64,000 bases of DNA, taken from NCBI GenBank assembly GCA_001643675.2, contig LSRY02000024.1, positions 186,001-250,000 on the forward strand, written 5' to 3'. Numbering within the stretch: the first letter of the stretch is position 1; the number at the start of each line of letters is the position of its first letter. Of this stretch, positions 15,631-49,893 are shown piece after piece. The notes beneath the pieces were generated by a model. It was given only the letters and a program-made list of their open reading frames with translations, ran no database searches and was not told the DNA's origin. This DNA is from Monocercomonoides exilis PA203. Lineage: Eukaryota > Protista > Preaxostyla. The position numbers and the translations under genes were made by a program.

Positions 15631-15653
15631 TTATCACTTTATGAATTTTGTTC

Positions 15654-18600
15654 TAGACCTGTGCGACAAGTGACAAATTTTGCCACTTAGTGACACAGGT
15701 GACAGACAGGACAATTTTTTATGATCGGAACCTTTATTTATATAAAATTTCATTTTTCTATATTTTTGCGAAAAAAGAAAGAGATTATTTTCCAATCAAG
15801 TGAGAAAATATATATTGACCTAAATTGAAACATTTTTTGAAATAAAATGATTAAAAAATTTTAAATATTGAAGAAAAATTTAGTGAAAAATGGTTTGGTG
15901 ACGAGATCAACTTAACTTTGATCTTTTTTGCCACTGGAAGTCACTGCTGTCACTGACGTCACTTCAAGTCAGAGAAGCAAAACTTCTTGAAAAAGAAGCA
16001 GAAGATTTTATAAACTAGTTTGGTTTTTAAAATGTTGTTAATAACATTTTTCATTGAAAATAATCCATAATTATTCTTTTCATTTTTTAGAAATCTCCTT
16101 TTTTCTTCAAAGAAATGAGTACAATGTCTTCTATCAAACTTTGTTGAGTAATTTATTGTTATATCCACAAATACAAACTTTTCAATGCGAAACAAGAAGC
16201 CAGTTATGCTTTTTCTTGTAATTCATTTTGAATATCTCATTAATTATTCATGATATTTTTTAATTTCAACTTTTTCAGATAAAATTGATGAATTCGACTT
16301 TAATTTTTCTGCTTGCATGTGATGCATCTCTTTTGAAGAAGGCTTGAATCAAGCGTTCAATAAGATGAACAGTAAAGGCTAATTTTGCTTTTGAAGCAAA
16401 AAATATCCAAATTGGCAAGTGATGAATACAACTTGTAAATGCAGCATGTGCTTTGTGAATTTGTTGTTGCAAGGTTTTATTCCATTAATTTATTATTATG
16501 CTATTTAAATATGATATATGAATGTATATTTTTTAATTGTTTCACTTCGATCATTCATCTTTTTTTTTTCATTAACTCTTAGCATATGATTCACAAACGA
16601 TATTTCTTGAGAAGTTGCGATTTTATCTTCAAATAACAACTATTATTCTCGCTTTCGTTCTGGCCTTCCCAAAAAAGAACATGCAAAGATACCAAGAAAG
16701 CAGAGAAAAAGGCAACAGGAAAACAACAAAAAAATCAAAGGAAATGAAACAAAGTTGAATGAGGATTACTATGAGAGAAGAATGAAACCAGCTTGAGAGG
16801 ATGATAGAAAATAGTTTTTTATCATAAAAGATATTTATTAGGAAGACATCAGAATGAAAAGAAAAAACAAATTTGAAAATATTTTAAGTTCACTTTTCAT
16901 TTTCTTTTCTTTATCGAGGAGTTTCACTTTTTTTTTTTGCAATTGTAATAAAAAAAGATATTTCAAAAGCAAAACATGAATGTTTTTTATTATTGAAATA
17001 TAAAAAAAGCACATAAATATGCTTTGAGAGTTAAAATTTTAAAAAATTCAATTTCTGACACAACATTATTAGAAATAGTCAACAGCAATTCATAAAGATT
17101 GGAATATTTTTTGTATAAAAATTCCAAAATTTCACGAAAACCAAATATGATTTCTTCGTGCACTTCTTCGTTCTTCTTTTCGTGCAACTCCATTTTGATT
17201 GTATTTCTTTTCGTTTATTCTTTTTCATCATTCATTTTTCATTTCTATTGCCTTGTTATTGCAATGAAGAATCACATGCTTTCATTCTTCGTTTCATTGT
17301 TCATTGTTGGCAGATGAATCTTTTCCAAAACAACATCAACATTCGCAGCTCTCAACAAGTCTTAAACTGCTCCTTTTCTATTACACACTGTTATTCAAAT
17401 AAAATTTTATTCTTCTTTTGTTCATTTCCTCTTTCCTCCCATTCTTTTCTCTTCCAATCCAAGTTTCTTGCTTGTTCTTCCAATTCTTTTACTGTCATTC
17501 TCAAAAAAAAAATAATAATAATAATAAAATAATTATAATTATAATCATAAAACAGCTCTATAACAAAAGGATATGTCAAACTTTATCTTTACTCCCATCT
17601 GATAATCAAAACTTCAAAGGCAGATTAAAATGGAGGAAGAGCCAAGTTGCATATTCCTGATGATATTCTAATATCTCTTTCATTTTATATACGAATAATT
17701 CTTTCACCATTTCATTTAAAAAAAGAAAAAGAAATTTCAAAGTGTTAAAAAAAATAGAAAAGAAAATTTCATTCATAATATTCAACATTGCACATTGTCA
17801 ACAAAGCCACTTTCACTTTATTTTGCATTTCCTCGTTTTTCTTCTGATTTATGGCAACTTTTAGAAGGCAAGAAATGCAAATCGAAAGTGATTCAGATGA
17901 TAAGGAACATACAAGAAATAGATTGCTTTCGCAAAGATCAATCAATAGCTTTTCATTTTTCTCATGTCCTTTCTTTTCATATTCCTCATTCATTATCTTT
18001 TTTAAATCTTTCACACAGCAAAGAATTATCAAAGAAAATGCTATTCATTTTTTTCAAAAATTTGCAATATCCAATATGTTTCAATTGGAAAATTGCATTT
18101 TCTATTGATATTATTTCTATCTTCATCATTTTATCCACGTCGTAATACAGTTCTTCTGTGAAAACTGATTTTAATTCTTTTCCATTCATTTCATTAATCA
18201 TTTCATTCATTTTCTTGATTTTCTGCATTTGTTCATCCTCATTTCAATCTTCAAGTTCAATTAAAAATACTTCAAAAAATAATAATCAAAAAGAAGAAGA
18301 AAATAACTATTTTCAATTCTAATACAGCATCGTTTAACAAACAATTAAACTTTTCTGTGATGCTCATCTCCAGTATTTTTTCCATATTATATTGGTTTGA
18401 GACAACAACTCTGTTTTTATAATGAATAGAAAGCTGGTCTATTTGTGCAAAATGAATCGGTCTGAATATAGAACTCAAGAAAACCATGATAACATCAGCT
18501 TTCACATTATTCATTCGAGCATTTGCATTACTAAAAAGGGATTTGAAAGAAAAATATGTTAAACTCACTAATTAATGTTATTATGTATCGGATGATCGAA

Positions 18601-18707
18601 ATATTTGAAATAAAATTAAGAAGTGGAAATTCTTAAAAATAAAAATAAACAATTTAAAAAAAAAAGTTTAAAGACCAAATATGCAGAATTTGCCTTTTTT
18701 TTTTTTT

Positions 18708-18744
<37 letters not shown>

Positions 18745-18790
18745 GTGACCGACAGCAACAAAAAATAGCAAGTCGTGTCGCATAGGTCTA
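15654..18790. mobile_element. Non-autonomous hAT-like Pack element A (3137 bp) carrying family copy 4
   Basis: TIR TAGACCTGTGCGACA at 15654 and TGTCGCATAGGTCTA ending at 18790; 8-bp TSD TTTTGTTC at 15646-15653 and 18791-18798; subterminal GTGAC/GTCAC repeats; no transposase seen. Confidence 0.9.
17040..18385 (-). pseudogene. Expanded helical-protein family, copy 4 (decayed, inside Pack element A)
   Basis: Fragments MEKILEMSITEKFN, MQKIKKMNEMINEMN, EKNEKLLIDLCE, KEILEYHQE, KELEEQARNLDWKRKE; many stops and frameshifts; intron 1 (about 18340-18271) retained. Confidence 0.85.
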
Positions 18791-20289
18791 TTTTGTTCCA
18801 TTCAGAGTTTCCGAACAAATTTCTCTCTTTTTTTAATTTTTCTAAACATTTTTGGATGAGAATGTTAGACTTGCAAGTATTCGATGCAGAAATTGCATAG
18901 AACAAATCATCGATTTTTTCATAATTGCTTAAATATTGCCCCAACCCACCAAAATAAATAAAGAATAAAAAACAAACATAGCAAAAACATGAAATAAAAG
19001 TGACGTTAACTGAAAAGCAGAACTTATTTTGGAAAAAATTTATAAAGAAGAACAGTAAAGATGAAAAGAAATTAAAATTGTTGTATTCTATCGAGTGATA
19101 ACAGTTATTTTTTTTTTTTCTTCACCTCAACACATCCAACAAATCTCCATTCCTTTCATCCTTTCAACAACTTCATCAAACGAAAAACAAAATCGCGGAA
19201 CATTGGATAAATCCGATTTTTACAGAAGACTCCTTCTCATCGCTTTGAATAAAATTGATTTCAGTAATCGAACTGATGTTTATGCCTGTGGCAAAACACA
19301 GCAAAGCCCATGTGCCACGGTGGAGTATGCTCTCGGATGCGTTGCTCCCTTCAGTAATGCCTCCCTCTCTCTTCTCCTCTCCATTTTCACTCCAACAAAG
19401 ACACTCACCTTCAGCTCGGCCGATACAAAATTCACTGTTTGCTATATTATTTTTCCAATTCTCATATACCATGGGTGCTTAACCCGTACCCACAAATTAA
19501 AATTAAAGTTCATATTTTGTTATATGAACACTATTCATTTCTAATCGTTGAGCTTTGAAAAAAATAGGAAAAGAACATCACAAATTTGAAAAGCATTATT
19601 GTTTATTGTTTGAGAAAAAAAGGTTTTGAAGTTCATTTTTTTTATATACTTCAACTTCATCAGTTTACGGAATTACAAGAATAAAAATGACCAAATAGGT
19701 TTCTTTCTCGTTCTTCTTTATCAATTATCACGTTCAACAGTCACAAACTTTTCCATGTGAAAAAAAAACAAACAAACTACTATGACAACAAAGTTTAAAA
19801 CTTTTCGCGAAATTCAATTTCTTTTTAACTAAAAGACGGTGAGACTGCTGTTTGAATTGCATTTTCCTTTTCCTGTTTTCTTCTTTCATCAATGAAGCTT
19901 TCTTCACTTATATCATCGTTGATAATTTAATGGATTATCTTTTTCTTTTTCTTTTTCTTTTTCTTTTTCCGTTTTATTTCTCTTTTCTCTTCATCTGTAG
20001 TAGAGCTTGACAAAAGAATGTTGAATTCTTTTCGAGAATGCTTGGTTTTTGTTGTTGAAGAAGTCTAGAAAGCTTTTGATTCTTCAATTTTATTGAATTT
20101 GTATCGAAGAAATGAAAGATGCTTTTCAGAATCTTCAAGTTGTTTTTTCAAATCAAGGTTGTCCAAATCTTCAATAATTGTTGTTGAATGTGATTTGTGA
20201 TCACCAGACGGAGAAAACCAACTCAATATGAAAGATGAAGTTGATTTTTCCGTGTTTGTTTTTTCTACAGAATTATTAACTGATGTATT

Positions 20290-21659
20290 CTATGAAACTG
20301 GGATTCTTTGCATTTTTGTTGGAGAACAGTTTCTGAAAAGTTCTTCACACCAATCTTGAGACGAAGAATGAAGATTTTCTTTCAATGCAGAGGCTTCAAC
20401 AGGTGCTCCAGATGCACGAGAGAGAGCACAGGGGCTGCAGCAACAGGCCAAACTCCTGTCTTTATGAATGCTGCTTTTATTGTTGAAGGTGTTCAAGCAG
20501 CTGCCAAGGCTTCAGGAAGAACTTCTGCGAGTTGTGTTCTATAAGAAGGGAGGGAGAATGGAGATGGATAGAAAAATTTGTTGTTCAATGTCGATTTAAG
20601 TCGAGAAAAGATACAGGAATCGCGCGGTTGAAGAAAGAGTGTCATGTTGGGTGGGCATTTTTTCAGAATGATAAAATTTTTTTTGCCGCTTCAATTACAG
20701 TTTCGTCATTGTGAGTTGAATGATTATCCATTAATAAAAGTGCACGATGAGAACTTGTAGGTTTCACTTTCTCCACGATTAATGGAATCCAGTAATTAAT
20801 CATGATGTTCTTGAAGATATCCTTAGTGATCCACCCGGAGGATGAAAAAATATATCTGATATCAAACGAAGAAAGAGTTCGAAACTCTTTCGGGAGTGTT
20901 TTCTTAGTGTGAAGAAGAAAACGAGGCAAAGAAGATCCGTCAGCGCAGACACAGAGGCAAATCGTGGCATTTGGCACTTTTGGAGGCGATGGAACACCTG
21001 GAGGAGTTTGATCTTTGAAGCAAACAACCAATTTTGATGAAGACTCCCCGCAAGTGTTTGAAGATTCGTCGAAATTGAATCTATCCGCAGCTGTGATATT
21101 GTCTTCCATAACAGTGCTCAATAATTCCGAAAACCATCCTCTGATGTTTTCTGGTGACTGCGCTGATATTTTTGCCACATCCGTATGCCTTGCTAAAGCA
21201 GCCTTCAATAAATCACTTCGTTGAATTAATTTGAACGCATATTTTTTGTAGATTGTTTTGAATTCTTTCTTTTGTTTTGATGATTATTCTATTAGATCCA
21301 CACACTTAGCAACATAGAGATATCACAAAAACAAACTAATAAATATTGCAAACCATGTTTTGCACATCGCGAATTTGAACAATTGTCTGATTTGATAAAA
21401 GGACTAGCACCTGGTTCTCAATTTCTTCCAATTGGTCGTTCGTAATTGCCTGAGGGTTCCCATTCCTTCCAGCCTTTCTGCCTGTTCTTTCTGCTCTTTT
21501 CCCTCTTTTCCATTCATCTTTTGACACAACTTTAGCTTTCATAGCAGTAGAATATTTTTCTTTAAAACAATGTCGAATTGCGAAAAGCTTTTTCGATGGG
21601 GATTTGAATACAAGATATTATCATATTACCATAAACCTGTGCAACTTTGTTGATGACAT
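20290..21659 (-). pseudogene. DDE_1 (pogo/CENP-B-type) transposase, DD35D, frameshifted
   Basis: FNFDES, SSSGWIT, LLLMDNHSTH and, after a 1-nt frameshift in an A run near 20680, CPPNMTLFLQPRD. There are 35 residues between the last two Asp if one A is restored. Ends approximate. Confidence 0.85.
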
Positions 21660-21941
21660 ATCCGGTTTTTCAGTCATCTTTATTGGGAATGATCAAGCAT
21701 ATCTAAATTTCTTTTGTTGACATTTTGAATCAAATATAACATTCACAAATTTCGTTGTCTGATATACAAATTAAATAATATTGAACTGTTTTATTATTTT
21801 CACAAGCTCTGAAAAAGTTGCGATTAATATAGTCTTTGGATTAAAGAAGAAACTGGCTCAATTTTGAAGGAACAAAAATAATCGGAGACTGAGCAAAAGC
21901 TGATCTTGGATTATTGACATCATTATTACATGTTTAAAAAT

Positions 21942-22199
21942 GGGTGAATATTTTTATTATCATGTCTTTTTTCGGGGTGTTTTATTTTCAAAGAATGTTT
22001 GTTTTTTGAAAGAAAATTCTGATGCAAAAAAGAAAAAGCTTGATTATTGTTTTTAAAAACAAATACTTTAACAGAATCAAAGATAAAAATGTATTCAATA
22101 AACCTTTTAACTTTTCAATTTTTTTTTCATTGATTTTCAAGTAATGTTTTTGCACAGAAATTTTTGTCTGAAAAAATATGATTTCAAAAATAATTACCC
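21942..22199. mobile_element. MITE family 2, copy a (258 bp), nested in the pogo element
   Basis: Imperfect TIRs GGGTGAATATTTTT... / ...AAAAATAATTACCC, AAAT on both sides; same-length homolog at 43943-44200. Confidence 0.85.
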
Positions 22200-22841
22200 A
22201 AATAGTTTTCAATATTTAAGCGTCGAATTGTGTTTTGAAAGCTCATTCAAATATGAATAGGGTGCGGGTTTGGCACCAGGGGGCGGGTTAAGCACCCATG
22301 GTTAAGTTCTTTTAATTCTGATAGCTTTTCATTTCACTTTATATTCATGAATATTAATCTTCTTTTCAACAGGAGTACATATCGTCATTTATTTTTCCAG
22401 AAGTCTAACATCGGATCACGTAAAACATATTCCTTCTTCATTTCTTCCAATTTCTCCTTTTCATCAAATGCAAATTCTGCTGTTGCTTTATGGAATCATC
22501 TATTTCTTCTCTTCAAAATGCATTTCTTCAAGAATAACAACAATCTCTTCAAAACATTCAATTTCTTTTGTTTCACTGATTCCAGCTTGCCTGTTGGCCG
22601 TAGAAGCTCTTATCTCATTGAATTGTCCTTCAAATATCGATTTTCCAATAAATCGCTTTCCCTCTTTGTTTCATCTTCGATGACTCATTAAAAGTCTGTC
22701 TCATTGTGAAATCTCTCGAAAACTATCCCTGCAACTGTTTGTTCAAAAAAAAATTTCCCGCCTTGTTCTTTCTGTTTCCTGAAATTCTTTCAATCTCAAA
22801 ATGAAAAAGTCAGAATCGATTTTCTTGTTGATTTCGTGCCT

Positions 22842-26400: not shown

Positions 26401-26495
26401 GAAGAAGATGATGATGATGAGGAAGAAGAAGAAGAAGAAGAAGAAACATTTCAAGATTCCATTCCATTTCCATTCACAGAATTCTCTTCTTTCGA

Positions 26496-31055: not shown

Positions 31056-32503
31056 ATGGAAATACGCAATGAAGGCAAATCCAATGATGATGTTCAGAAG
31101 CTATCATGTGTTGAGAAATTTTCAAGTTTGCGTCAATTGCGTATTTTCAAAGATTTCATGTTTTATGATTTTTGATGATCGTGGAAGAATTGTTTGCTCA
31201 GTTGGAGCATTGTAATGAAACTGAACAGAAGCAGAAAATCCTTGAAATGAATGAAATAATTGATGGAGTGAATAATGAAGAATTTGACTCAATTTTCACA
31301 AAAGAACTATTCAACAAAATCGACAAAATGATTGAAGAAAAGAAAATAACAATAAAAAATGCAATTTATCTGATGAAACATGCCGGATATAACAAAGTTC
31401 TTTTGAACTTTGAGTGTTATGGCTTTTATAATTCTTTGTTGAGCAAAAAATTTGAGAAAATGCTTGTTGATAAAGATAAGAAAACAAAAGAAAAGAATGA
31501 AAAACTTCGTACTGATCTATGTGAATGCTGTCTTTTTCTCAACTGCGTATTTTCATATGAACTGGTATCAATTTGCGTGCCTTGCCTTCTGAAAGTGGCT
31601 ACAAACAAAGATGAAAGAAAAGAAACTCAAAAAGATGTGGAAATAGCTTTGCTGGCTTTGAGCCAAATTGGATATTGCGTATGTTCACTTCTATTTCATT
31701 TTTGAAGTTATTTATTTGTTTTTCTTGTTTTTCATTAGGAAATTGAACAAAAACTGTATTTGAAGGAAATCAAAGAAATTATCGAATATCATCAGGAACA
31801 CCGCAACCTCACTCGACTTGCTTATCGATCAGCTTGGGAATTTTCAATGATCCGATTATTCCGAGACAGAAGCCTGGGGCAAGTAATTGTGAATGAGCTG
31901 CATTTTGGAAGAGAAGCAAGAAGAGAAATCGAAGAGCTGACAAGATGTAATGGTTGGAAGAAGAAACCTGAGGAAATGAGCAAAGAAGAAGCGAATGAAG
32001 TGCTAGTGATTCGGAGATGGATCCAAACATTGAATTCTTATTTTTGCAATTATCATTTGTATAATGAAGAATTTGATAAGATTTTTAGCTGCATTTCCTG
32101 TGTATTTCGAGCAGCGAAGGATAATCACAAAGGAATTAGCGATTTGTGCATTTATTCCTTGAGAAATGCAACAGAAAGAGGAGTTGTGAAAGTTGATGTC
32201 TTGTTGAAAAGTGGTGCTGCTGATGCTGTTTTGGATGGGGTACAGCGACCAACGTTGAGCGAAGGTGTGGCATGTGAATGCTTATGGTTCTTTTTGAATA
32301 TTCCAAGAAGACTGAAAGAAGAGGAGGAGGATGAAAGGGAAGAAGCAAAAAGAAAGGCAACAAAAAAAGAGTTTTTGGAAAAGATGGAAGAAGAAGGGTA
32401 CGAAGATATCATCACGAGCTTTTATGAAACATTTGATTTTCTTGGGAAAAAAAATCATGTTTATTTATCGATAAACATTTATGATTATTTTGTGAATGTT
32501 TAA
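31056..32503 (+). CDS. Expanded helical-protein family, copy 5 (intact)
   Basis: Exons 31056-31125, 31188-31678 and 31739-32503, introns of 62 and 60 nt; close paralog of copy 3; TAA stop. Confidence 0.9.
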
Positions 32504-34097: not shown

Positions 34098-34599
34098 CTC
34101 GAAATCCCTTTTATCTCCGTATGTGTGATCAAAAACCCCTTTCCTAACACGCTCAAGTGCGGAGGATGAGTTGAGAGCGTGCGGGTGATGGTGCGGCACT
34201 CCTGCTCTTCACCCTCTCTCTCTTGTGATATCTTTGAGGCGACATTGGTCTGGCCTCTGTATCTTCAGTGTCATTCCCCACCTGACCTATGCTTTTCACG
34301 ATACACTTCTTCAGATCTTTGCCTCTCTTCTTCGGTGGAATTGTGTCCCTCACTCTAGTCAGCTCACAGATATTATTGGGAATAATGGAGGGTGTCCTCT
34401 GACTGCCTGGTCGTCGGGATGCTGAGTTTCGTGACTTAGCCGTTTCACCTCTGTTTTCTTCTCCACTCGGCAGTTTCTTTCCACCTCTTGATCGCTTTCT
34501 CGTAAGCTTCTTCCCTATCTCAGATCCCGCTTTTGGTAATTCCTCAGTGCAATCTTTCGAATCAACTTCTGCTATCTCCAGCGTCCCCTCCTTCAATTC

Positions 34600-35580
34600 T
34601 CCACTCTTATCTGGCTTGTTATCTTCTCCCATCTGGTGTGCTTGTCCGCCGATTGTCTGCAGGATCCATTTTGTGCCTCGTTCCTGCGACACGGTTTTGT
34701 ATTCCTGGGCCGCTCTTGAACCCGGCTCCCATCTCGCATAAGCATTGATCGCCTTCCAGTCCGTTCCTTCTTGTCTTGCTCAGTGTGTAATCGCTGCATG
34801 TCTTGTAGAGAACACGGTAAATGTGTCGGGTATTCCGTTCTCTCTCAGAATAGCTGTTAGCTCTTCCAAAATTTTCTGCAAGTTAGCAGATCTCCTCCCT
34901 TCTATGTCCAACCACGCATGATCATTCTGAAAAGTTGTCTTTATGAACTCCATCCAACATTGGAGCGCCCCCACTGCATCGATACGTGGATTGTGGTGTT
35001 CATTAATAATAACCTTAACCGTCTCTCCCCCTGATGTTTTGATTCGTGCTTGTGTCTGTTCAATATTATCTTTTAATATCGTTGTCTCACTTCTCATTCT
35101 CTCCATCTTTGCTGGCCTTAAAGCTCCAAATATTATAGTGAGGATGAGAGCTCTCCTCTGGAGCGTTCGTATATCCTTTGTGTCGTAAGTGGTCTCAGCC
35201 CATATGGTGATTATTGTCAAGTCCCACCTTGTCTTGTACCATTTGACCTTTCTCGGCTTCTCAACCACATAAGTCTTAATAAATATCTCAATGTCTTTCC
35301 CTTCAATCTTAATCTCTCTGAATGGTTTTATAGAATCCAGCACTTTCCCAACTGTCTGATAAATCACTCCAATTGAAAGGTACGTATTCTAGAGAGTTTC
35401 AGTGAACTCTTCCATAATCCATTTAGCGTCTCTGGATGTGAGGGGGTCAGTGTCATCCATTCTTTCTCTATCCAAAAATTGCTTGAATCTTCGCAGCGCT
35501 CTCCACGTATCCCTTTCACTCTTTTGATTTTTAAGAATTGCTGCTGCTATGTCCTTCGCTCCCACATATACTCCCCATGT
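34600..35580 (-). pseudogene. DIRS tyrosine recombinase remnant
   Basis: ORF 34780-35367: KPRKVKWYKTRWDL, GALRPAKM (catalytic R), KTS, FSTRHAAIT (HxxR-like); premature stop. Boundaries approximate. Confidence 0.8.
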
Positions 35581-36740
35581 TAAGAAGAGGTCTTTTCCTG
35601 GAGTATTTTCCTTTCCAGTTTAACGCTTATGACCTCTCCTGGGAATAACTTCCAGCCTTCCCTTATCATCTTCGTTCCTGGTGTCATGCACTCCTGAAAG
35701 GTCCCCAGGGTCTTTGTCAAATGCCCAGGCTGCAGTAGCGGGGTCCAGGTCTGCCCCCGCCAGGCTGGCAGAATCAGAATCGTCAGATTCCTCTGAGCTT
35801 CGTTCATCTTCTCTTTCATCACTCGTCCAATGTTTCTCAGGAACGGGTGGACTAGGACTATGTCGTCTTCTGGTGTTCCTTTCTCTCTCTTCCTTCTCAT
35901 GGAGGATAGTCTCCAAGTACTTCCGCAGGGCACCGGCGCAATCTGTTCTGAAATTGTATCTAGTGTTCTCGGTGCGATTGTCTGTAATATCTCTGCGATT
36001 TTCTCCCCACTCTTAACATAGTCCGGCTTTTTCGCCATCCGACTGAGTGCATCTTCTTCCGTGTTCTGTTCTCCCGGGAGGTGTTCCGTCTGTATAGAAA
36101 TGTCCAGGCTGTTCAATATCTTCTCTAATGCTCTCAGTGTTGGAATGAGCAACGTGGCTCCTTTTTTCTTCTGTATCGTCCATCTCGTGGACATGTTGTC
36201 TGTCTTCAGACGAATATGATCTATCTTCTGTTGTTGCAGCCATGCTCCCTTTCTCTCTTGTTTCCTCAACACTGCTCTGGACTCCTTCTCGTTTATCGCT
36301 AACGCACTCTCCTGGAGGGTCCAACTTCCGTGGACATATATCTTCTCCTCTTTGTTCTCCCTCGGTATTGTCAATACTGCACCCAAACCCAGCTCTGACG
36401 CATCCGTTGTCAGCTCTGCTGGTCTGTTCCTTCTCTTCAGACTCCTTGGTCTGTTTTCTTGTAGTATCTTTCTTCAGTGTGTTAATTCTCCCAGTATCAT
36501 TGGGTTGACTATCACGATTCCCTTCCAGCCTCCACGGGCTATTGCATGCCTCAGCACGTATTGCATGCGCTTCATCCACAAGCTCGCTGGTGGGTGTTGT
36601 AACCTCACAAAATTCAACCTCCCGAGGAGTGCTGCTAAGTCCCTCGTCTTTTGTCTCCTTCTTTCCTTTGCCAGCGCTATCCAAATTCGCACATCCTCCA
36701 GGAGCAGCTCTCTCTTTCTCTCCTGGAGTGTCACTTCCAT
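35580..36740 (-). pseudogene. DIRS RNase H plus C-terminal methyltransferase-like remnant
   Basis: RDLAALLGRLNF, TTDAS, AINEKESRAV, LKTDNMS, EHLPGEQNTEEDALSR, then VLVHP...LILPAWRGQTWTPLL. Confidence 0.8.
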
Positions 36741-36746
36741 CTTCTC

Positions 36747-37767
36747 TTAGTTCCACAGCCATCCCAAAAACTCAACGCTCCTTGCGGGTTCTAGCTTCAG
36801 CTTCTCCTCCGACAGTATCCAGCCCAGATTTCTCAGGAACTGGGCTATCTCCTGTGAGATCGATCTCAAGGCATCCCTGTCTGGATGCATAAGGAGAATA
36901 TCGTCCAGATATATCACCAGCTTTACCTTCCAATGTTCTCTGATATATGACGCTACCCGTCTCATTATCTTCGTGAATACTCTGGGCGCGTCCTTTGCTC
37001 CAAATGGCATCCCCACGTAAGCGTAGCATTGACTTTGAAAGCTGAAGCACATATAGGGACTAAATTGCTCGTCCACCTTGACATGCTGATATGCACTCGA
37101 TATGTCCATAGTTGTCATCCAGTCGTTCTCCTCCAGGAGTTCCACCACTGTCTCCTGGGAATCCATCTTTAAATGCTTTCCCCTGCACTATTTCGTTAAG
37201 AGCTCTGCAATCTAGTATCTTTCTCCACTATTCGTTCTTCTTTCTGACCATGAATGTCGGGTTGAACAACTTCACCTCCGACTCCTGTATGGGCTTCACC
37301 ACTCCGTCCTTCAATTCCAACTCCAAGAGGGATAAATAATTGTTCGTCATCTCCTTCATCCCTCGAAATTCCTGTTTGAGTTTTCTTTCCTCGAGTGAGA
37401 TTGGGGACTGAGGACTTCTCCATCGAGCTCTTATACAATGGCTCACTAATTTGTCTCCCCCAATCTTCTTCCACTCGCTCAGCCTGTTCAATAGTCTTCC
37501 AGGAAGTGGCTCCTTCAGTGGCCCAATCGCTGCAGTCCTCATATCTTTTGGCGTCTTGAAGCCATGCTGAATCTGTGTACTCTCTTCTCCTTCGAGAGTA
37601 TCTGCAATAGTTCTCCTCGAGTTCTCCTCCCGAGCACTCCCAATTGGTGAATTTGTCACAGTCCCAGAAGCTCTCCCAACAACCATCTCGTTCCTCATCT
37701 CGTTCATCTGTCTCGTTACTCGGGGATATGCGGAGTCTTCCTCTGTGTTCTCTCTCCCTGTTCCCAT
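36747..37767 (-). pseudogene. DIRS reverse transcriptase remnant
   Basis: PTFMVRKK, MTTMDISSAYQHV, GMPFGAKDAPRVFTKIM, IYLDDILL, EFLG; stop and frameshift near 37170-37230. Confidence 0.92.
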
Positions 37768-37899
37768 TTCGTGGTCTCTCGAGATTTCTATATCTATCCT
37801 CTTCTCTCAATCGAATGAGCTCAGTGCCTCTTCGTTGTTCTCGCAAACTCTCACGGGTTCCGTTCTTGTAACTATCTGTCGATTGAATAAAACTCCCCG

Positions 37900-39125
37900 T
37901 TGCATTGTCACTCCCTCGGAATTCAATAGCATTCCGTTTCCGATCTTTTGCAACAATGCACGACTCCCCTCCCCGTCAATTTAAATAGGTCCATTGGCTC
38001 GTTCCAATAGCTGTTCCCCCTTGAGTCCTTGGGAGATCCGGTGGCAATGGTCCCGTAATAGGGACTGGCCTTCCAGTGATGGTTGGGACGAACTGTGCCA
38101 GAAACTGGAGCGTTCTCTTCTTTCCTTTGAAGTCTGCGAATCTCCTTCAGCATCCCCTTTTCTTGAGCTGTCTGTATACAAATCCTTGGGTGCTCCTTCC
38201 CGAACTGTATCTTCTCGGGAGTCCCCCTCTGGATGTTGTGGGCCCGAAACCTGTTGTGGAGTCGGGAGATGCACAGTATCCTGCTGCATCTCCCTCTGCT
38301 TGAAAAAAGCTTTTGCTCTCTTCCGACTTTTTTTGATTCTCTGGCACTTCCTTCGCCATTCCTCCTTCAAAAAAGCCTTTCGCGCTCTCCCAACCCGATT
38401 AGTGTTTTCCTTTCAGTAGGTTTATTCTGCTGATACAGTCTGCAATAAGCGCATAGGCGCAAAACAGTCCTCTCAGTCGTTCTTTCTCCTCTTCCATGAT
38501 GTGCGCCTTCCATAATTCCTTCACCGTGAGGGCTTCGATCGCTTTCGCTGCTTCAAAGCCCGAGTCAAGGGCAGGCTGGAGGAGTTCGATTGCTCTACTC
38601 GCTTCAGGTGAATCTCTTCTCCTCTTTGTTGTGATGGATGTTCTGGCAAGCGCATTCCAATTTGTGTCTGTGTGTCCTGTAAAAAAAAAATCATTCTCAC
38701 TCTCTGGGATAAATGTATTCAATATGTCATCATTCATTCTTTTCGAGCCAGCTTTGCAAAACTCAATAAACTTCCTCAACTCGCTCGCTTGTCTCCAGGG
38801 TGTCAACACATTTCTGGGAAAAATTCTGGTTTATTCTTCTGTTTTTTCCTTTTCTTCCTGCACTTCTTGTTCTTCCGAATCCCAGTCGCTATCCTCTTCA
38901 TATTCCCGTCTCCTCGTGCGGCTAACTGAACGACGCAATCTCTCACGCTTTCCTTGTTTCCCTCTTGCGATCAGATCACTAAAATTTGCATCCGACTCCG
39001 ACTCGCTCGATCTCGACTGGGATCTCTTCCTTTGTCATTCTCTCTTTTCCTTTTTCATTGGCAACATTCCCGAAGCTCCGGACTGCATTGGCCATGTCTG
39101 GCTCCTAGCGAATTCTTCCATCATG
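37900..39125 (-). pseudogene. DIRS gag-like ORF remnant
   Basis: Broken ORFs 38399-38809 and 37981-38370 lie upstream of RT; assigned by position only. Confidence 0.5.
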
Positions 39126-41203: not shown

Positions 41204-41335
41204 GGCAAATTGAGCTTATTGTTTCTGAGCTACTTTACGTACATCGAGTCAACGAGTTTGGTCCATTTCCCGTTTGACTTTTTTCTCTTTTGAGCAGCTT
41301 CTTTTTGATCAAAGCGAAAACATTCAGTGTTATAT

Positions 41336-42348
41336 GGTTAACTTTTTGATGAGACTATTTCCTTAATTGGCACTTTTTTTGTTTTCGAAAACATAATGCT
41401 GAGAAGTGTGAAATAACTTTCAGCACATTAAAAATCCTTTTTAACGAGATTTATTCTGTTTATTTACTGTTTTCTTTTTTTCTTTTTGTTTTTTTCACAT
41501 CGAGAAATTAAGTTTTTTTGCAAAATTTAATAAGACTTTTACCAGCCAACCAGGCAATTCACAAGAAATTGATGAGTTGTTTTGAATAGCATATACTATA
41601 ATCTAACTAATTTTAAATTCTTTTTTTTCACAAACACTTTTTTCTTGTTTTTCTTCTCATTTCATTTTTTTAACAACATGCAAACATAAAACCGATTATT
41701 TCTTTGTATTTATGATGAAATGATAATAATAAAAATTTGATATGAAAAACAAATAGTCTAATAATAAAGTATTGGAAAAAAGAAACATTTAATATTTCTA
41801 TTTGTCAAGAACTTAACTTTTTTACAAAAACTTGATCATCGATGATTTTAAGAAAGCGCCATATGTCCGTTTCAGATAAATAGAAAAAATTAATGTTATA
41901 TTTTTCAACATCTCATAATTAAAGTATCTGTTTTGCACATCTTATTTTTCATTATTTTTATCATTTCATCATAAATACAAAGAAATAATCGGTTTTATGT
42001 TTGCATGTTGTTAAAAAAATGAAATGAGAAGAAAAACAAGAAAAAAGTGTTTGTGAAAAAAAAGAATTTAAAATTAGTTAGATTATAGTATATGCTATTC
42101 AAAACAACTCATCAATTTCTTGTGAATTGCCTGGTTGGCTGGTAAAAGTCTTATTAAATTTTGCAAAAAAACTTAATTTCTCGATGTGAAAAAAACAAAA
42201 AGAAAAAAAGAAAACAGTAAATAAACAGAATAAATCTCGTTAAAAAGGATTTTTAATGTGCTGAAAGTTATTTCACACTTCTCAGCATTATGTTTTCGAA
42301 AACAAAAAAAGTGCCAATTAAGGAAATAGTCTCATCAAAAAGTTAACC
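41336..42348. repeat. Long palindrome / foldback element 2
   Basis: 391-bp inverted arms 41336-41726 and 41958-42348 with no mismatch noticed; degenerately palindromic spacer. Confidence 0.92.
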
Positions 42349-43942
42349 CTTCATAATAAATTGTATAAACAAATGAAACGAACTTCAACAACGAGAACAC
42401 AGCTGTCGAATGGAAAAAGATCAAGGTCAAATGCTTTTATTTTCAAATTTTCCTGTGCACAGAAATAAAACAATCAAGTTCAGATCCAACAAAAAAAATG
42501 AATATTCATAAGTTTGGTGAAATCGAAACATCAAAAGAAAAATTCAAATTTCATCTAATTTTGTCTTGTATCTTGGGTGTTCGAATACAAATTCTTTCGG
42601 TTGAAATGAAATTTGTGGAAGAATAAGGAAGACAACTTTCCTTCAAAACATACGTAAGAACAACATTTGAAAAGTTGTTTTTCTTCACATGATAAAGAGT
42701 ATGAGATTTAAGTGGAAAGTAGTTTAAAACGAATCAAAAATTCAGTTGCAACAGGATTGAATGGGAGACAACAATTTGTGATGTTGTGCCACGAGGGGAA
42801 TCCTTTTTGCAGGTGAGTATTTAAATTGGTACCAGTTTTATTATTGGCACAAAAATTATTTTCGTCATCTTCATTTCATTGAAGCTCACAAATCTGTTTC
42901 ATTCCATAAGTTCAATATACAGATAAAAATAAGATGAAGAGGAAAAATTTTTAGCGAAACTTCTTCTGCAGCATTCTTGTTTTATCAAATTCTTTTTTTT
43001 TTCTGCTTCATCAAAGCATTTGAACAGTGTTATTGAAGCGATCCACGACTGCAACACTTTGTCGTTTGGAGACGCTGTCAGCATTTGCAATTTCGAAAAG
43101 ATTCCTTCGTTTTGATAATTCTGCACAAAGAGAAAGTTTGCTGATTATCCTCATTCCCTTTCTTCTATTTAACATCGGCTCTCTAAACGAACAGAAAATT
43201 ATAATGCCAGATTGAAAATTCAACCCAATAAATCAAGTTGTCACAACATATAAATTTTAAAGTTTTATTTCTCTCGTATCTCAGATCTCGAATGTGTGTG
43301 ATGCAGAGACTGTGAAGAATGAAGAAGAAGGAGATGTTCATGAACTAATTGTATATTAGGCAAAAAGTTTTGTTTTATTTCTGAAATCGTCCTCAACATT
43401 ATCATCTTGTTTCTCGATTCATTGGCTGCTATGTCTTTGACCTGCTGAGAATTTGATATCCAAAAATCTTTTCTGCGCGTATTTATTGATATTCACTTTA
43501 CTGTGCTTTCATTGGAGGCTGTGTTTTAACATTGAGTCTCATTCACTCAGCGAATGGATATGATGAATCCAGTTTGAATGCTCATCGACAAATTGTTTTC
43601 TGTTTGAATATAAACGATTTGAGGAAAACAACGACTTTGAAAGAGGAATGAAGAAAATGATAATCATAACTCAAAAAAGGAGATAACGTTGGAGAATAAA
43701 AAAGAGGATTTCAAATAAAAAAAGAAAAGGCATATATTAACGATATGGATTGTGAATTATTAATTTGTCTTCCATTTGAAAATTCAATTCAGCTCTTCTT
43801 CGCTATGTTTGTGTTCTTCCATTTTTTCATTTTTTCTTTCAAAATATTTTATTCTGTTCATCTCGTGGACATTACAGCTTTGTTTGAGTGTTGCTTGAAC
43901 GATGAAGTTTTCATCATTCTTAAGCAATTATTTTATTCAAAT

Positions 43943-44200
43943 GGGCGATTATTTTTGAAATCATATCTTTTTTCGGGGTGTTGATTTTTCTAAGATTGTT
44001 TGTTTTTTGAAAAAAAATTTTTATTCAAAAGAGAAAAAGCTTGAAAATTGTATGAAAAAACAAATTGTTTTTCCGTATCAAATATAAAAATGCATTCAAC
44101 TAGCCTTTTCACTTTTCAATGTTCATTTGATAATACTCTAGATCATTTTAAAAAACCGAAAATTTTGTCAGAAAAAATATGATATCAAAAATAATCACCC
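43943..44200. mobile_element. MITE family 2, copy b (258 bp)
   Basis: TIRs GGGCGATTATTTTTGAAATCATAT / ATATGATATCAAAAATAATCACCC; AAAT direct repeat on both sides. Confidence 0.88.
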
Positions 44201-44374
44201 AAATTATCATAAAATAATAACTTATCTTCATTTGCAAGATTGACGATTCCACATGAAATCCACACATTATCGTAACCTTTGAAAATAGATATCAATTATC
44301 TTCATCACACATTTCATGTATCTTTTTCAGTTATCACCATTGATATCCAGTTTTCAAACAAAAATTTGAGACAT

Positions 44375-44642
44375 GTGTCAAAATATTTTATTTCAAGAAT
44401 TTTCATATGAAAAATATTCACTTTTCATCGACTTTTTTAAAATCAAAAAACACAATAAAAATCTGTCCATTAAAAGACATTTGTGAAATGTTACAAAACA
44501 TTTTATTATTATGTCAATGATGTTTGATTACAGTAATGAAAATCAAATTTATTTTGAATTCTGAGAAAGCGAAATAAAGTTATGAGCGAAGTGATTTTTC
44601 AATGCATTGTGCAAAAAAGCTTATTAGTTCGTATTTTTCCCC
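44375..44642. mobile_element. MITE family 1, copy c (inverted, more decayed)
   Basis: Reverse-complement similarity to 33053-33317 (TGCATTGTGCAAAAAAGCTT...CGTATTTTTCCCC); same length; TSD not preserved. Confidence 0.7.
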
Positions 44643-45189
44643 AATTGTATAAAATTTGATAAACATTTCATAAAAGTGAACATAGCCAATCAACGTTTGC
44701 TGAAAGCTGTTACTGAAAAACAAAAAATAAGTGTTTCTCAAAACATAGTTTTAATGAAAAGTTGACTAAGTTGAAATTAAATTATATTTTACATTTTTTC
44801 TTTTCTTTTTCTTTTTTGCAACAGATAAATAATTTTTGAACTTCTCCGTTATATAGGTGAGTGGCCGAACCTTTTTAAAAACATAATCGTTTCATTCGAG
44901 TTTTGATCAAATATTTTTTCAATAAGATTTTGTAAAAAATGAACGAAAACTGTTGATTCATGTTGTTTGTGATGTGGTTGAAAGGATAAATATTTTTTCG
45001 AATATCCTATCGAGATTTAATTTTTAATCAAAACTGGAACGAAAGAATTTTTTTTAAAAAAAACTCAGCCATACAGAAAACACTTCAATCTTTCAGAGAA
45101 AAATTTTCGATTTTTTTGTTGATAAAAAATATTTAAAATGTTCACGATCTTTTTTTGAATTCTTTTGACAATCAATTCATGGTGAGAAG

Positions 45190-45498
45190 AAAAACCTGCA
45201 CATATGACATTTTCTTTAGAATTAATCAACCAATTTCATATATGAAGAAGGTTTTGACATTTGAACTCCGCGGTTAATTTCCTTTTGTCCAATATATGGT
45301 ATTTCAATAAATAAATCAAAAACCAAAATTTTAGACCTTTTTGATCTTTTGATCAAATATTTCTGTATTTGATTTATTTATTGAAATACCATATATTGGA
45401 CAAAAGGAAATTAACCGCGGAGTTTAAAAGTCAAAACCTTCTTCATATATGAAATTGGTTGATTAATTCTAAAGAAAATGTCATATGTGCAGGTTTTT
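45190..45498. repeat. Palindrome 3 (hairpin/MITE-like)
   Basis: 131-bp arms 45190-45320 and 45368-45498, about 2 mismatches, 47-bp spacer. Confidence 0.9.
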
Positions 45499-46433
45499 TC
45501 CCTTGTGTGGGTTTTTTCCCTCATTATCAGCAATAGTGTGATAATCAATTTTTTAATGATATTTTTTGATTTCGAAAAGATTCAAAATTGTTTCGTGAAA
45601 CAAAATTTTGAAGTGAAAAAAATATTTATAATTTAGTGCACAATACTCTCATTAATGAAAAAAAACAAATGCATATGGTGCATATTTTATCTTGAACTCA
45701 AAATTTTATCTCAACCCTGTTATTTTGAAACTTATTTAAGCTTTTTTTGATTTGTGAAAAGGCTAAAAACAAAAACATTATAAACAGACTTTCTGATATT
45801 TTTGTTTTTAAGAATTCTGTTAAAAAATTTTTTGTGGTTTTAATGTTCAAAAAAATATTCAAAATTTTTATTATTTTAGGACCCAGATCAAAGACTTGCT
45901 GGCTGTGAAGCCAATATTTTATACCGATCGTTTTAAGCCACAGCATCATCATTCCACATTCCTATATTATTATTTTTTCTTGTTTTTAACTTTTTCAATT
46001 AAATTCTCGACCTTTTTTCTCATATCATTGTTTTTGCTAAAAACACGATTTTCGGAACAAATATGAATTAGTGCAAATTTTTAGCACATAAAAAATAAAA
46101 ACAAGGTGTTATTTATTGTAAACTTTTGTTTAATTTTGAAATGAAAAAGAATTGAACAAGAATTTGAAGCGAAATGGCAGAACATATAAAAATTTTGATC
46201 TGAAAATTGTTCGTCATATACAAATATTTTGTTGTTTTTTTTTTGAGATATCATTTCATTTCAAATTTCTTTTTAATTCATTTCAGTTAATTTTTAAACA
46301 AATGAATACATATCTCTGAAATTGTGTTTTTTGAAAAAATGTGTGAAATGAGAATAAATGTTAAAAAAACAAGTTGAGAAAGTTTGAAACAACCAAAACT
46401 TTTAATAAAAAAATAATGTTTTATGATTTGAAA

Positions 46434-46478
46434 TAGACCTGTGCGACACGACATGCAATTTTTTATTGCTGTCGGTCA

Positions 46479-46536
<58 letters not shown>

Positions 46537-49500
46537 AAAAAATTATGTCAAATTTTTTGATATAGAAACTGCAAAATCGAATAAATTGATGGTTTTAAGT
46601 TTGTTTTCAAATTTAAAAATATATTTCTATTATAAGATCATTGGATCCATTATAACATAAATTTATTCATAAAATACAGTTTTCTAATAATATGCGTTAC
46701 ATGTCATGTTTATTCATACATGAATAGTGTCAACATTGTTGTTGTCATGAACAATTTAAGTTTCGATTAAACTTCAATTCAATAAATCTAAGCATGTGCG
46801 ATTTCAATTTTTATGATAAAGTAATGTTGTTTCCTGAATGAAAAATATTTCAGAAAAATTGAGGATACATGCCAATTGAAAATTCAATGGTATGCATTCG
46901 TTGTCACATTCAAATTCTTAATTATATCCTTTCTCACTTTGTTTTTTATTCGGAATTGTTTTTTGAGCTTGAAAGCTGCGCTGAAAACGAAAGGAAACAG
47001 AAAATAGATTAAATGAACATAAGATAGAAAGAAGTGAATAAGGATGAATGCAATTCAATTTTCTCAAAAGAACCATTGACTAAATTGACGAAATGATTAA
47101 ATGAAAGAAATCTCCACTGGAAAATGTCATTTTTACAATTACAGCATATTGGATATTTCAATGTGATGGAAAGTTATTGGAATGAAGGCCTTTGCTCATA
47201 TTCATTGTTTGGTAGATATATGAAAATGATTGATGACGCAGAAAAAAGAGGAGAAGAACGAAAATCTTCTTTCTAATATTTGCGTGTGAAATCTTTTGCT
47301 TTGCAACCCGATATTTTCTTAGTTGCTTTCAATTTGAATACCTTGTCTTCTGAATGTTGCTCTGAAGAAGGAGGGAAAAGAGAAAGTTCAAAATGATGCT
47401 TAAACTGCTTTGTTGTTATTGAATTGGTGTGATGAATTTTTTGTATGAACACTTCCATTTCATGTTTGATCCTTTGGAATTTCTTTCTAATTTTCTTTTT
47501 AGGAGCGTGGAGTGAGTTTTTCATGAATCATTTAAAAGAGATTATCCAATAAATCAAAAAAACAACAATCTTATATGACTCACACATCAGACAGAATGGC
47601 AGTTTTTGATGAAAATTTGGAAGATGTCATTGCAAATGAACTGCATTTCGGAAGAGAAGCAATAAGAGAACTGGAAGAGTTGGAAAGGTGTATTGACTGT
47701 GAAAGAAAAAAGATGAAAGAGGAAATGAAATGAAAGAAAAGCTTGTTTTGATGAGATGGCTCTTGGTAATGGAGTTATATTTTTTCTTAGGCAAACTGTG
47801 AAATGAAAACATTCAAAGTTAATCAATTGCTCTTTTTTGTATTTCGAGCTTCGAAGGACAATCACAAAGAAATAGGGGAGAAATGTTTATATTTATTTAG
47901 AAATAGCAGCAGGAAATAGAACTTTGAAAACAGATGGCTTATTAACAGAGGGAGCTATTAATGTTGTTTTGGAAGAGATGCAGCGACAAACAGTGGTAGA
48001 TAGAATGTTATTTGATTGCTTGCAATTCTTCACGAATGTTTTGAAGAAATTGAACGAAAAGGCGGATAATAAAATGGAAGAAGAAAAATACGACAATTTA
48101 ATCATTAGCTAACAAAGGATACTTTATTTTTAAAGCGGAAAATATTACGATAATTCATCATGAGATATTAATGAATATTTTGTGAATATTTCACTTTATT
48201 TTAATCAAAAATATTTGTAACTTCAAAATTATATCCTTTTTATTCAATTCGCAAAATTGATAACAAGCACTTGAGAGTCTAAAAATATTATTTGACTTTT
48301 AATAATTTCACAAAAAAAAAAAAAAAATGAAGTGAAACCTAATTTCATTTGAAAAAAAAAGTGTTTGGAAGATTATTCCGTACTTCTCTTTTCTTCTTCA
48401 GAAAACTTCATGAAGAAATATATTGATTTAATCTTCCGGGAAAATATCACATTTCATTCTTCATCTTTCTTTCATCATCTCCAGCTGCCCTTTATTTTTC
48501 CGATAAAAAAATCTTTCTATTCCGCTGGTTTTTCTCTGATCTTTTCAATTGCAACTCTTTCCAAAAAAAACTCCCTCAATTTTGATTGAATCTTCGTATT
48601 AACACATAGCAATAGGATAAAAAGGATCGAGAAAGAAAAATTGCTTCGATGATGATCCATTAAAAGATGAAAATATCGAAGAGGAGGTGAACCATACAAC
48701 GTGAGTGTAGAATTTTGAACAGTGGAATGAATGTTCTGTAAAAAATAACAATTTGTCAGTGATCGTTAAAAATTAACTCAACATGCACCTGGAGAATAAA
48801 GAATTGTCATAATTTCATTGAATGTCCTGCACTTTAATGGTTGAAATTTTGCAATTGCTGTTCAGAATATATCACAAGCATGTCCAACTTTAAGCATTTG
48901 AGTAAATTGATTCAATACCTTTGTCTTTGTTCCTGCATATACTTTAATTTTCATTGCTTTTTCAAATGTTCCTCGAAAAGGCATTGATATTGCTTTTCAC
49001 TTCCATAAAAAATTATATGAAATTTCATCCTTTATTTTATAATAGATCCGGAATTGTAATTCAAAACCTTTGTAAGGTATGTTTTCAAAATAAAATTATT
49101 TATGTATTCATAAGGGAAAAAATCACATCACGTGAAGGAAATTGAAAAATGATTCAAACAAACAAAGAATAATGAAACAATGAAATTTACAAACATATCA
49201 ATCTTCAAACAATCGTTAATTGAAATTGTCCATCAATGTGCATTCTTCAGATCTTTTTTGGACACATGTTTGGTTCTTTCAACGAAAATAAAGGATTATC
49301 AAATATCAAATGAAAAGTTATGGTTATGAAAGATGGAAAAACGAAATCTCAAACATTTCATAAGCTCAACAACTTATTTTGTATTTCTGTTTCTTTTTCT
49401 AATCTGTTTATTTCATTGACAAAACGTGATTTCAGTGACAGAAGTGACTACCAGTGGCATTTAAAATTCCATATTTCACTGATCTTGTCAGTGAAAAATA

Positions 49501-49893
49501 TATTAAGGAAATTTTGTTTAATTGAATTTTCAAAAAAGAATTGCAAAAAAATTTTAATATCATTTTATAAAATATATTTATTCAAATTTGATAAAAAAAA
49601 AACACTTTGGATTTCTTTTTTCTTTTCTTTTCTCTTTTTCTTTCTTTCTTGTTTTTTTTCAGAAAAAATGCATCCTGCCATGTAACAACATAATTTTAAA
49701 ATTTTGTTGTTTAATGAAACATTCTGTCAATAATATAAAATAATTTTTTGATAATAATTAATATTTCTATTCGAAAATTATTAACAAAATAAAGACGAGA
49801 AAATAATATTTATGGTTGTGATCAGCAAATGATTGTCCTGTCGGTCACCTGTGTCAGTTACTGGCAAAATTTGCCACTTGTCGCACAGGTCTA
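46434..49893. mobile_element. Non-autonomous hAT-like Pack element B (3460 bp) carrying family copy 6, inverted relative to A
   Basis: Perfect 15-bp TIRs TAGACCTGTGCGACA / TGTCGCACAGGTCTA; 8-bp TSD ATTTGAAA at 46426-46433 and 49894-49901; both end types, the poly-A tract and the GTCAC cluster match element A. Confidence 0.92.
46838..48190 (+). pseudogene. Expanded helical-protein family, copy 6 (decayed, inside Pack element B)
   Basis: ELESCAENERKQKID*MN, ISTGKCHF/QHIGYFNV, IANELHFGREAIRELEELER, GAINVVLEEMQRQT, EYFVNI; both introns recognisable; many stops. Confidence 0.85.

Follow-up and report, generated by a model that had tools for sequence, protein, structure and literature searches.

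Broken copies of a two-exon gene family hold a fixed place in a hAT transposon family of the oxymonad Monocercomonoides exilis

Introduction

Capture of genes by DNA transposons is known in plants and fungi. Plant Pack-TYPE elements (Pack-hAT and Pack-MULE) are non-autonomous elements with terminal inverted repeats (TIRs) and a target-site duplication (TSD), and they move host coding DNA by transduplication (Gisby and Catoni, 2022; PMC8903248). A histone H3 gene was captured by a hAT transposon in the fungus Pseudocercospora fijiensis and related species, where it sits beside the transposase of a complete element that has TIRs and an 8-bp TSD (Dhillon et al., 2019; PMC6710886); there the gene was amplified with the element, the amplified copies were inactivated, and intact host copies persist (PMC6710886). 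Here we describe a gene-carrying hAT family in Monocercomonoides exilis PA203, represented by two elements (element 1, W1, and element 2, W2) within a window of 64,000 nucleotides (C19:186001-250000, on contig LSRY02000024.1), each enclosing a decayed two-exon member of a large gene family. To our knowledge, the mobile elements of metamonads are almost undescribed. The genome papers on M. exilis put DNA transposons at 4.5% and unclassified repeats at 35%, without reference to hAT elements or to this gene family (PMC8767320).

The M. exilis elements resemble both of these systems in part. Like Pack-TYPE elements, those of about 3 kb have no transposase and hold host coding DNA between their TIRs; whereas Pack-TYPE elements typically hold fragments of one or several genes that were captured separately by different elements, the M. 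exilis cargo is one whole intron-containing gene with about 70 bp of its 3' flank, present throughout the family by what appears to be descent, and present also in transposase-bearing copies. As in the fungal case, two long copies (L020 and L037; L-numbers denote genomic loci other than the window elements, C-numbers denote contigs) hold a transposase together with the captured gene, all of these genes being broken, and the element-borne copies of the gene are broken in 31/31 elements while the best free copies are nearly all open. The fungal system differs in its housekeeping cargo, its decay by repeat-induced point mutation and its hundreds of copies, compared to a two-exon member of a family of about 10^3 genes, decay by stop codons and frameshifts, and tens of copies in M. 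exilis, where the host is an oxymonad, most copies are 3-kb elements without a transposase, and the cargo shows signs of exchange with free paralogues. We interpret the two window elements as non-autonomous members of one hAT family whose ancestor would have taken up its cargo in a single event at the DNA level, after which the cargo would have been inherited and the ends mobilised in trans; we give this reading a probability of roughly 80%.

Results

Two elements with unlike ends

The 15-bp TIR sequence TAGACCTRTGCGACA has four exact matches in the window (15654+, 18776-, 46434+ and 49879-), compared to a chance expectation of 0.02, and these form two inward-facing pairs, 15654/18790 and 46434/49893. 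Read directly, each pair is flanked on both sides by its own perfect 8-bp direct repeat: TTTTGTTC for element 1 (15646-15653, identical to 18791-18798) and ATTTGAAA for element 2 (46426-46433 and 49894-49901). Because the two TSDs are distinct and perfect, the elements are independent insertions.

Inside the 15-bp TIR, the two ends of each element diverge from one another. The A-end, of about 60 bp, reads ...GCGACAAGTGGCAAA...GTGACCGACAG, and the B-end, of about 46 bp, reads ...GCGACACGAC...CTGTCGGTCAC and then passes into a long A/T run; CTGTCGGTCAC is the reverse complement of GTGACCGACAG. In element 1 the A-end (15654-15713, plus strand; E 2.7e-28 against an A-end profile of 31 elements) consists of the TIR at 15654-15668 and a conserved subterminal region with a GTGAC(C/A)GACAG motif, and the B-end (18745-18790, minus strand; B-end profile E 1.2e-21) consists of the CTGTCGGTCAC motif and the TIR at 18776-18790 (TAGACCTATGCGACA on the minus strand). 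Element 2 lies in the opposite orientation within the window, opening with its B-end (46434-46535, plus strand; B-end profile E 8.5e-22), which comprises the TIR at 46434-46448, the CTGTCGGTCAC motif and an A run of about 55 nt, and closing with its A-end (49834-49893, minus strand; TIR 49879-49893; A-end profile E 4.7e-30).

Neither element contains a long open reading frame (ORF) or, as judged by tblastn, a transposase remnant. A profile of 96 annotated proteins of the gene family finds in each one collinear, full-length, fragmented family copy that begins about 400 bp inside the B-end and reads toward the A-end, with an intron-sized gap kept at the junction of exon 1 and exon 2 (profile position ~180), the place of the family's single short intron. 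The copy in element 1 (17059-18243, minus strand; six collinear profile matches, positions 26-433) is made up of exon 2 (about 17059-17716), the gap (17717-17774) and exon 1 (about 17775-18243). On one side of it lies a non-coding A-side spacer (15714-17058), which has no transposase match by tblastn and has genomic relatives only in the element family; on the other, upstream of the cargo, lies a B-side spacer (18244-18744) that closes with some 45 T residues in a row (about 18697-18743). The copy in element 2 (46947-48091, plus strand; seven pieces, profile positions 15-386) is followed by an A-side spacer (48092-49833) that has no transposase remnant and whose genomic matches, at 69-80% identity, again fall only in the element family. 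A preliminary description of this DNA, made from its letters alone, had proposed 15-bp TIRs with two end types and an 8-bp TSD for each insertion, the lack of a transposase, and a full-length, decayed, intron-retaining family copy in the same orientation relative to the ends of both elements, and it was correct on each of these points. The kept intron indicates that the cargo was copied at the DNA level.

The A/T homopolymer runs of about 45-55 nt (window 18697-18743 and 46480-46535) have counterparts of differing length directly inside the B-end of every element. A retrocopy tail was considered as their origin and rejected, since the run sits upstream of the cargo on the cargo's sense strand. 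Four RNA runs from one study contain 33-40% of the sampled words of 15400-19000, a figure that applies to this stretch as a whole.

The element family across the genome

We searched the PA203 Oxford Nanopore Technologies assembly (82,301,135 bp in 101 contigs, N50 1,379,369 bp; PMC8767320) and found 114 TIR matches with at most one mismatch, versus 4 for a reversed control. We examined 34 pairs, comprising 32 retrieved from the genome (L001-L032) and the two window elements. Perfect 8-bp TSDs flank 26 of the 34, so that the genome scan called for in the preliminary description does recover TIR pairs with duplications. The TSDs of L016, L017 and L026 are perfect with a one-base offset, attributable to a 9-bp duplication or to slippage in a T run, those of L005, L024 and L029 match at 7/8 positions, and L008 and L031 have none. 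Across the 26 perfect TSDs no target-site consensus is visible. Every pair that was typed at both ends by a stricter pattern joins one A-end to one B-end, and never A to A or B to B.

Most of the elements are of similar size (2.8-4.4 kb in 28 cases). Two are miniature derivatives with an A-end and a B-end, L019 (335 bp, perfect TSD) and L008 (356 bp). L018 (8.3 kb) contains a nested DIRS-like retroelement (L018:1280-5390) related to a copy in the window at about 34150-38800, and L016 (C38:434989-441336) is made up of two elements and contains two cargo copies and, in its interior, a B-end. At L017 the B-end of another element lies 12 bp further on (C44:156156), indicating tandem insertions. 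L031 (C25:2418921-2419416) is a 496-bp unit with variant ends TAGACCTCTGCGACATGACAAG that are identical on both sides; its 8-bp flanks are mutual reverse complements, and hence form a palindrome that reaches into the flanks and not a TSD.

The elements fall into about nine subfamilies of 2-4 copies, plus singletons. Over 3,134 bp, a single substitution and three indel positions separate element 1 from L010, and the TSDs of the two are not the same; identity is 99.74% for L011 and L026 and 95.6% for element 2 and L007. Because near-identical copies have different TSDs, movement has been recent. Between subfamilies the ends differ by 2-9% and the interiors by 20-37%, which is the pattern that selection on cis-acting ends would be expected to produce.

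The cargo is the same gene in the same place, and is always broken

The family gene is enclosed in all 31 elements longer than 2 kb, compared to an estimated ~10% of random 3.3-kb segments, and in each it is collinear, keeps one strand with respect to the ends and lies about 1.4-3.0 kb from the A-end; enclosure beyond chance, which the preliminary description had proposed as a check, is thus confirmed. In each of these 31 elements the cargo is broken by stops or frameshifts, and the accompanying search for intact enclosed copies found none. The 3-kb elements give no transposase match by tblastn with eight transposase queries and, given their DNA-level copy of an intron-containing gene, conform to the earlier picture of non-autonomous elements carrying a member of this family.

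The framework around the cargo is likewise common to the elements. With the terminal 110 bp and the gene excluded, the A-side spacer is homologous in 26/28 elements, and its genomic matches are other copies of the element family only, never the flanks of free family genes. In L013, about 60 bp just 3' of the cargo stop resembles the 3' flank of a free copy.

Transposase-bearing copies have the same cargo. L020 (C48:121625-129833; 8.2 kb, perfect TSD) and a second complete two-gene element, L037 (C44; 5.3 kb), each combine both ends, a full-length but broken transposase and a decayed cargo adjoining the B-end. Transposase and cargo also occur together in L038, L039 and L040, and L036 has the transposase with no cargo, giving cargo in 5/6 transposase-bearing copies; in all five (L020 and L037-L040) it is convergent with the transposase. 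Origin of the 3-kb elements by simple deletion from the present long copies was rejected, as the DNA common to the two classes amounts to only about 300 bp at the A-end together with the exon 1/B-end side.

The fixed place and strand in 31/31 elements, together with the presence of the gene in 5/6 transposase-bearing copies, argue that the cargo was acquired once by an ancestral element and then inherited. The simplest reading of these sequences is that the cargo would be an inherited part of one transposon lineage rather than the product of Pack capture case by case. The preliminary description had classed the elements as Pack transposons, and that part of it does not hold: gene, place and strand are the same in all elements longer than 2 kb, the spacer is common to 26/28, and a single clade of element-borne copies is not rejected.

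The transposase lineage and its assignment to hAT

The transposase-like frame of L020 lies next to the A-end and aligns along the full length of an intact ORF from a relative (L033, 918 aa; C21:62328-65084) at 38-57% identity, with six in-frame stops and at least one frameshift. We found six copies of the element's own transposase lineage (on C48, C37, C44, C32, C59 and C80), which are 60-100% identical and all broken. The search for an autonomous copy with the same TIRs and a hAT transposase therefore succeeded in part: L020 and L037 have both ends and a full-length transposase, and the transposase is broken in all six copies.

More distant hAT transposase relatives occupy more than 150 loci, many with open frames of 900-1,000 aa; examples are L033:828-3584 (minus strand), L034:500-3397 (minus strand) and L035:1088-4120 (plus strand), in which a low-complexity insert of about 300 aa precedes the C-terminal domain. 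An open 917-aa transposase on C26 was considered as the partner of an adjacent exact TIR and ruled out, because that TIR is a B-end facing away from it.

Three intact relatives match the C-terminal domain Dimer_Tnp_hAT (PF05699) at 21.6 (L033), 21.3 and 19.7 bits, which is threshold level at a cut-off of 21.4. Using the N-terminal 510 residues as the query, an exhaustive representative search returned 202 homologues, and 4/10 of the homologues tested from this search have Dimer_Tnp_hAT at 21.5-32.6 bits. In 38 aligned homologues D220, D282, C317/H320 (CxxH) and R370/W371 (RW) do not vary, and conservation of the zinc-finger residues C73, C82, H96 and C98 is complete or almost complete (at least 90%); the third acidic residue sits in the C-terminal part, outside the modelled residues 1-510. 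The AlphaFold model of L033 residues 1-510 (predicted local distance difference test, pLDDT, 84.9) has Hermes for all of its top 12 PDB matches (E 6.5e-10 to 1.2e-7, template-modelling (TM) score ~0.55), with the next-best fold at E 3e-4 and TM 0.2. At the sequence level, Pfam searches with the pieces of the broken L020 transposase gave no match, a profile of three transposases against PDB sequences gave no match to any solved structure, and a word-indexed protein search with the 918-aa transposase gave no database match, its low-complexity words having probably swamped the search. For the nearest other hAT lineage (L041/L033), whose left homology edge is sharp, no inverted repeat was found in the DNA examined.

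The element family belongs to the hAT superfamily, as the preliminary description had supposed, because it has 8-bp TSDs genome-wide and its transposase relatives have a Hermes-like fold, the C-terminal domain and the conserved residues. Like Hermes, Ac and Buster hATs, it combines an 8-bp TSD, short TIRs starting with TAG and asymmetric subterminal regions with a repeated short motif on the DNA side with a BED-like zinc finger, an RNase H-like core with CxxH and RW, and a hAT C-terminal domain on the protein side. Unlike Hermes-type elements, the M. exilis family has a transposase that reaches 900-1,000 aa, some 300 aa of them in the low-complexity insert, and that has no PDB match at the sequence level; its TSDs show no consensus.

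One capture or several

We built a maximum-likelihood protein tree of 30 element-borne and 100 free copies, in which broken copies were entered as gapped rows of profile-aligned pieces with gaps at the breaks; searches used single exons or open frames as queries. The tree is star-like, with very short inner branches. An approximately unbiased (AU) test does not reject a single element-borne clade (p 0.51), and imposing that clade improves the log-likelihood by 4.5 units over the free search. On the question raised earlier, whether enclosed copies form one clade or several, the AU test is compatible with one clade, and the unconstrained tree scatters the element copies. The protein data cannot decide between one capture and several, and the shared framework argues for a single origin.

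Several observations count against this reading of single uptake and inheritance within one hAT family. The unconstrained tree intersperses element copies among free ones with 11 changes, 3 of which are forced by well-supported branches. Two loci on C2, L044 and L045, match exon 1 of element 1 at 85% and 83% DNA identity, while exon 1 of the other elements is at most 72% identical to L044. Divergence between subfamilies is 31-37% in the gene segment and 18-30% in the spacers. Because of the scattered tree, the greater divergence of gene than spacer, and the closeness of element 1 exon 1 to a free gene, the cargo does not have a simple single-descent history. On the side of the transposon itself, no intact cognate transposase was found, 6/6 genomic copies having stops and most having frameshifts. 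The textbook hAT TIR consensus is YARNG, with G at position 5; the element TIR begins TAG and has C at this position (TAGAC). Finally, the comparison with other hAT lineages for the cargo gene covers the nearest of them, in the 0.9-1.9 kb that follow its transposase.

The exon 1 match in L044 lies at C2:1470940-1471430; L044 has both exons intact and no element ends. The match of element 1 to L044 does not extend to exon 2 or to the flanks, and exon 2 of element 1 is far more decayed than exon 1. These data suggest gene conversion, in which exon 1 of element 1 may have been overwritten from a free gene. As for the two C2 loci, L044 (C2:1469440-1472930) and L045 (C2:856942-860426) are 87% identical, including at least 540-620 bp of flank, and L045 has disruptions. 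Within subfamilies the gene segment differs by 4.6% versus 5.3% for the spacer. Identity between L013 and L009 falls from 87-92% over the first 600 bp to 54-59% in exon 2. The likeliest cause of such mosaicism is recombination, whether from element to element or with free paralogues; the pattern can be explained only in part by AT-biased decay of DNA that was once coding and richer in GC.

The alternative that survives best, which we regard as quite possible although we do not favour it, retains one element framework and has its gene segment captured or overwritten several times from different free members, with homology guidance fixing position and orientation; the routes would be template switching during excision-gap repair or ectopic gene conversion with the ~10^3 paralogues. 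The scatter of element copies in the tree, where element 1 and L010 pair with a free protein at 97% SH-aLRT (Shimodaira-Hasegawa-like approximate likelihood-ratio test), is what such replacement would leave, as are the resemblance of element 1 to L044 in exon 1 and not elsewhere, an excess of gene over spacer divergence that appears between subfamilies (31-37% versus 21-27%) and not within them, and the fall in identity between L013 and L009 toward exon 2. The same tree, however, is star-like with decayed copies on long branches, and the AU test does not reject one clade; AT-biased decay could account for some of the excess divergence; the only clear tract is exon 1 of element 1, and its transfer could have gone either way; and neither exon 1 of L013 nor the gene of element 2 has a close free relative (none closer than ~72% in DNA for element 2). 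An extension of this idea, which we offer as speculation and think rather unlikely, is that the transposon family acts as a mobile recombination partner: through repeated exon-sized exchange between its cargo and about 1,000 paralogues, by gene conversion or gap-repair template switching, it would shuffle sequence in the largest gene family of the host, and the cargo would be periodically refreshed.

The host gene family and its expansion

Six-frame searches of the genome gave 1,957 (exon 2) and 1,663 (exon 1) first-look candidate loci, and the best 150 scored in each exon search all have E <1e-35 and are nearly all open. Among database proteins the 120 best matches are, without exception, uncharacterised M. 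exilis MONOS_ proteins of about 430 aa. The family protein has no Pfam domain; its predicted structure is an all-helical solenoid (pLDDT 84.9) whose resemblance to armadillo (ARM) repeats is weak (E 1e-4 to 1e-3, TM 0.35-0.48), and we describe the family as lineage-specific proteins that weakly resemble armadillo-like alpha-solenoids. The largest M. exilis family published is that of 332 tyrosine kinases (PMC6759080); the ARM-like family is probably hidden among the 35% of unclassified repeats.

Free copies are clustered: of the best 150, more than 20 lie on one contig, C48 (658 kb). Recent free duplicates resemble each other beyond the gene, over 350-620 bp upstream and at least 500 bp downstream, and no element ends occur in these flanks. 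The A-end and B-end profiles have no match near L044-L046 or near any of the window's four free copies. Element-borne copies amount to a few tens of the ~1,700-1,950 candidate loci, and all 31 examined are dead. Since the family consists mostly of free, open copies and the element-borne ones are few and dead, transport does not explain its expansion, and the suggestion in the preliminary description that transposon transport helped the family to expand is not supported.

These data also bear on the opposite derivation, in which the gene was an original accessory gene of the hAT lineage, the apparent host family consists of transposon copies without ends, and transport drove the expansion. Copies with a transposase and copies without one both contain the gene, and its convergent arrangement is fixed; this fits the idea, as do the restriction of the family to M. 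exilis among the best 120 database matches and the large unclassified share of the genome (35%; PMC8767320). We nevertheless consider it improbable, because every element-borne copy is dead whereas the free exon matches, among the best 150, are nearly all open, and the L033/L041 lineage shows no family gene in the 0.9-1.9 kb that follow its transposase. In addition, there are no element ends near the window's free copies or L044-L046, free duplicates share flanks without ends, and free copies form local clusters, as on C48, of the kind that tandem or segmental duplication would give. For the idea that the paired repeats are chance matches or segmental-duplication edges and not transposons we found no support, and it is already refuted by the match counts (4 versus 0.02 in the window, 114 versus 4 for the control in the genome), by copies with different perfect TSDs and by near-identical copies in unrelated flanks.

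Other features of the window

The six family copies that the preliminary description had counted in the window are the two inside elements and four free ones, all located with the family profile. The free gene at 31184-32500 (plus strand) has both exons open and no element ends nearby, and it adjoins P0028 (MONOS_17611) in the tree. The gene at 13930-15245 (minus strand), also open in both exons, is a fairly recent duplicate of it that includes the flanks (84% identity over 500 bp downstream). At 9202-10521 (minus strand) lies a free gene whose intron is read through in frame and whose closest database protein is MONOS_15427 (92% identity), and at 1016-2345 (plus strand) a free copy with exon 2 in three pieces, which is probably a pseudogene. 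The DIRS-like retroelement at about 34150-38800 (minus strand) has reverse transcriptase/RNase H ORFs and a tyrosine-recombinase-like ORF. A pogo/Tc5-type DDE_1 transposase fragment occupies 20663-21208 (minus strand; Pfam PF03184, E 1.4e-9).

Discussion

Our preferred history, that of one hAT family with a single uptake of cargo, begins with an ancestral and probably autonomous element that would have taken up a whole two-exon family gene as DNA, most likely once. Alternative transposition involving the ends of two nearby elements is one known route of gene uptake. The resulting layout would have been an A-end, a transposase reading inward, the cargo reading inward from the opposite side, and a B-end. 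Both the transposase-bearing copies and the transposase-less 3-kb elements would descend from this two-gene element, the latter having lost the transposase and kept the ends of about 60 bp and about 46 bp, the family-specific spacer and the cargo. A transposase supplied in trans would cut at the 15-bp TIRs, probably guided by the inverted subterminal GTGACCGACAG motifs, and reinsertion would create the 8-bp target duplication; the cargo would have no role in movement. The recent movement may have been due to a related intact hAT transposase, or to a cognate copy that has been lost or not assembled. Sequence exchange between element-borne and free copies would have come later.

The family is thus a well-documented case of gene-carrying hAT transposons in a metamonad, and a protist instance of the transposon gene capture already known in plants and fungi. 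To the elements first seen in the window, this analysis adds the decayed two-gene long copies, structural evidence for hAT, a test of the clade and the mosaicism of the cargo. The clean ends, TSDs, subfamilies and two near-identical pairs could support oxymonad transposon tools or activity assays. Transport as the driver of gene family expansion was an attractive idea, and it is corrected here. The mosaic pattern hints at exchange between element-borne pseudogenes and their host paralogues, and this is the part that is worth following up.

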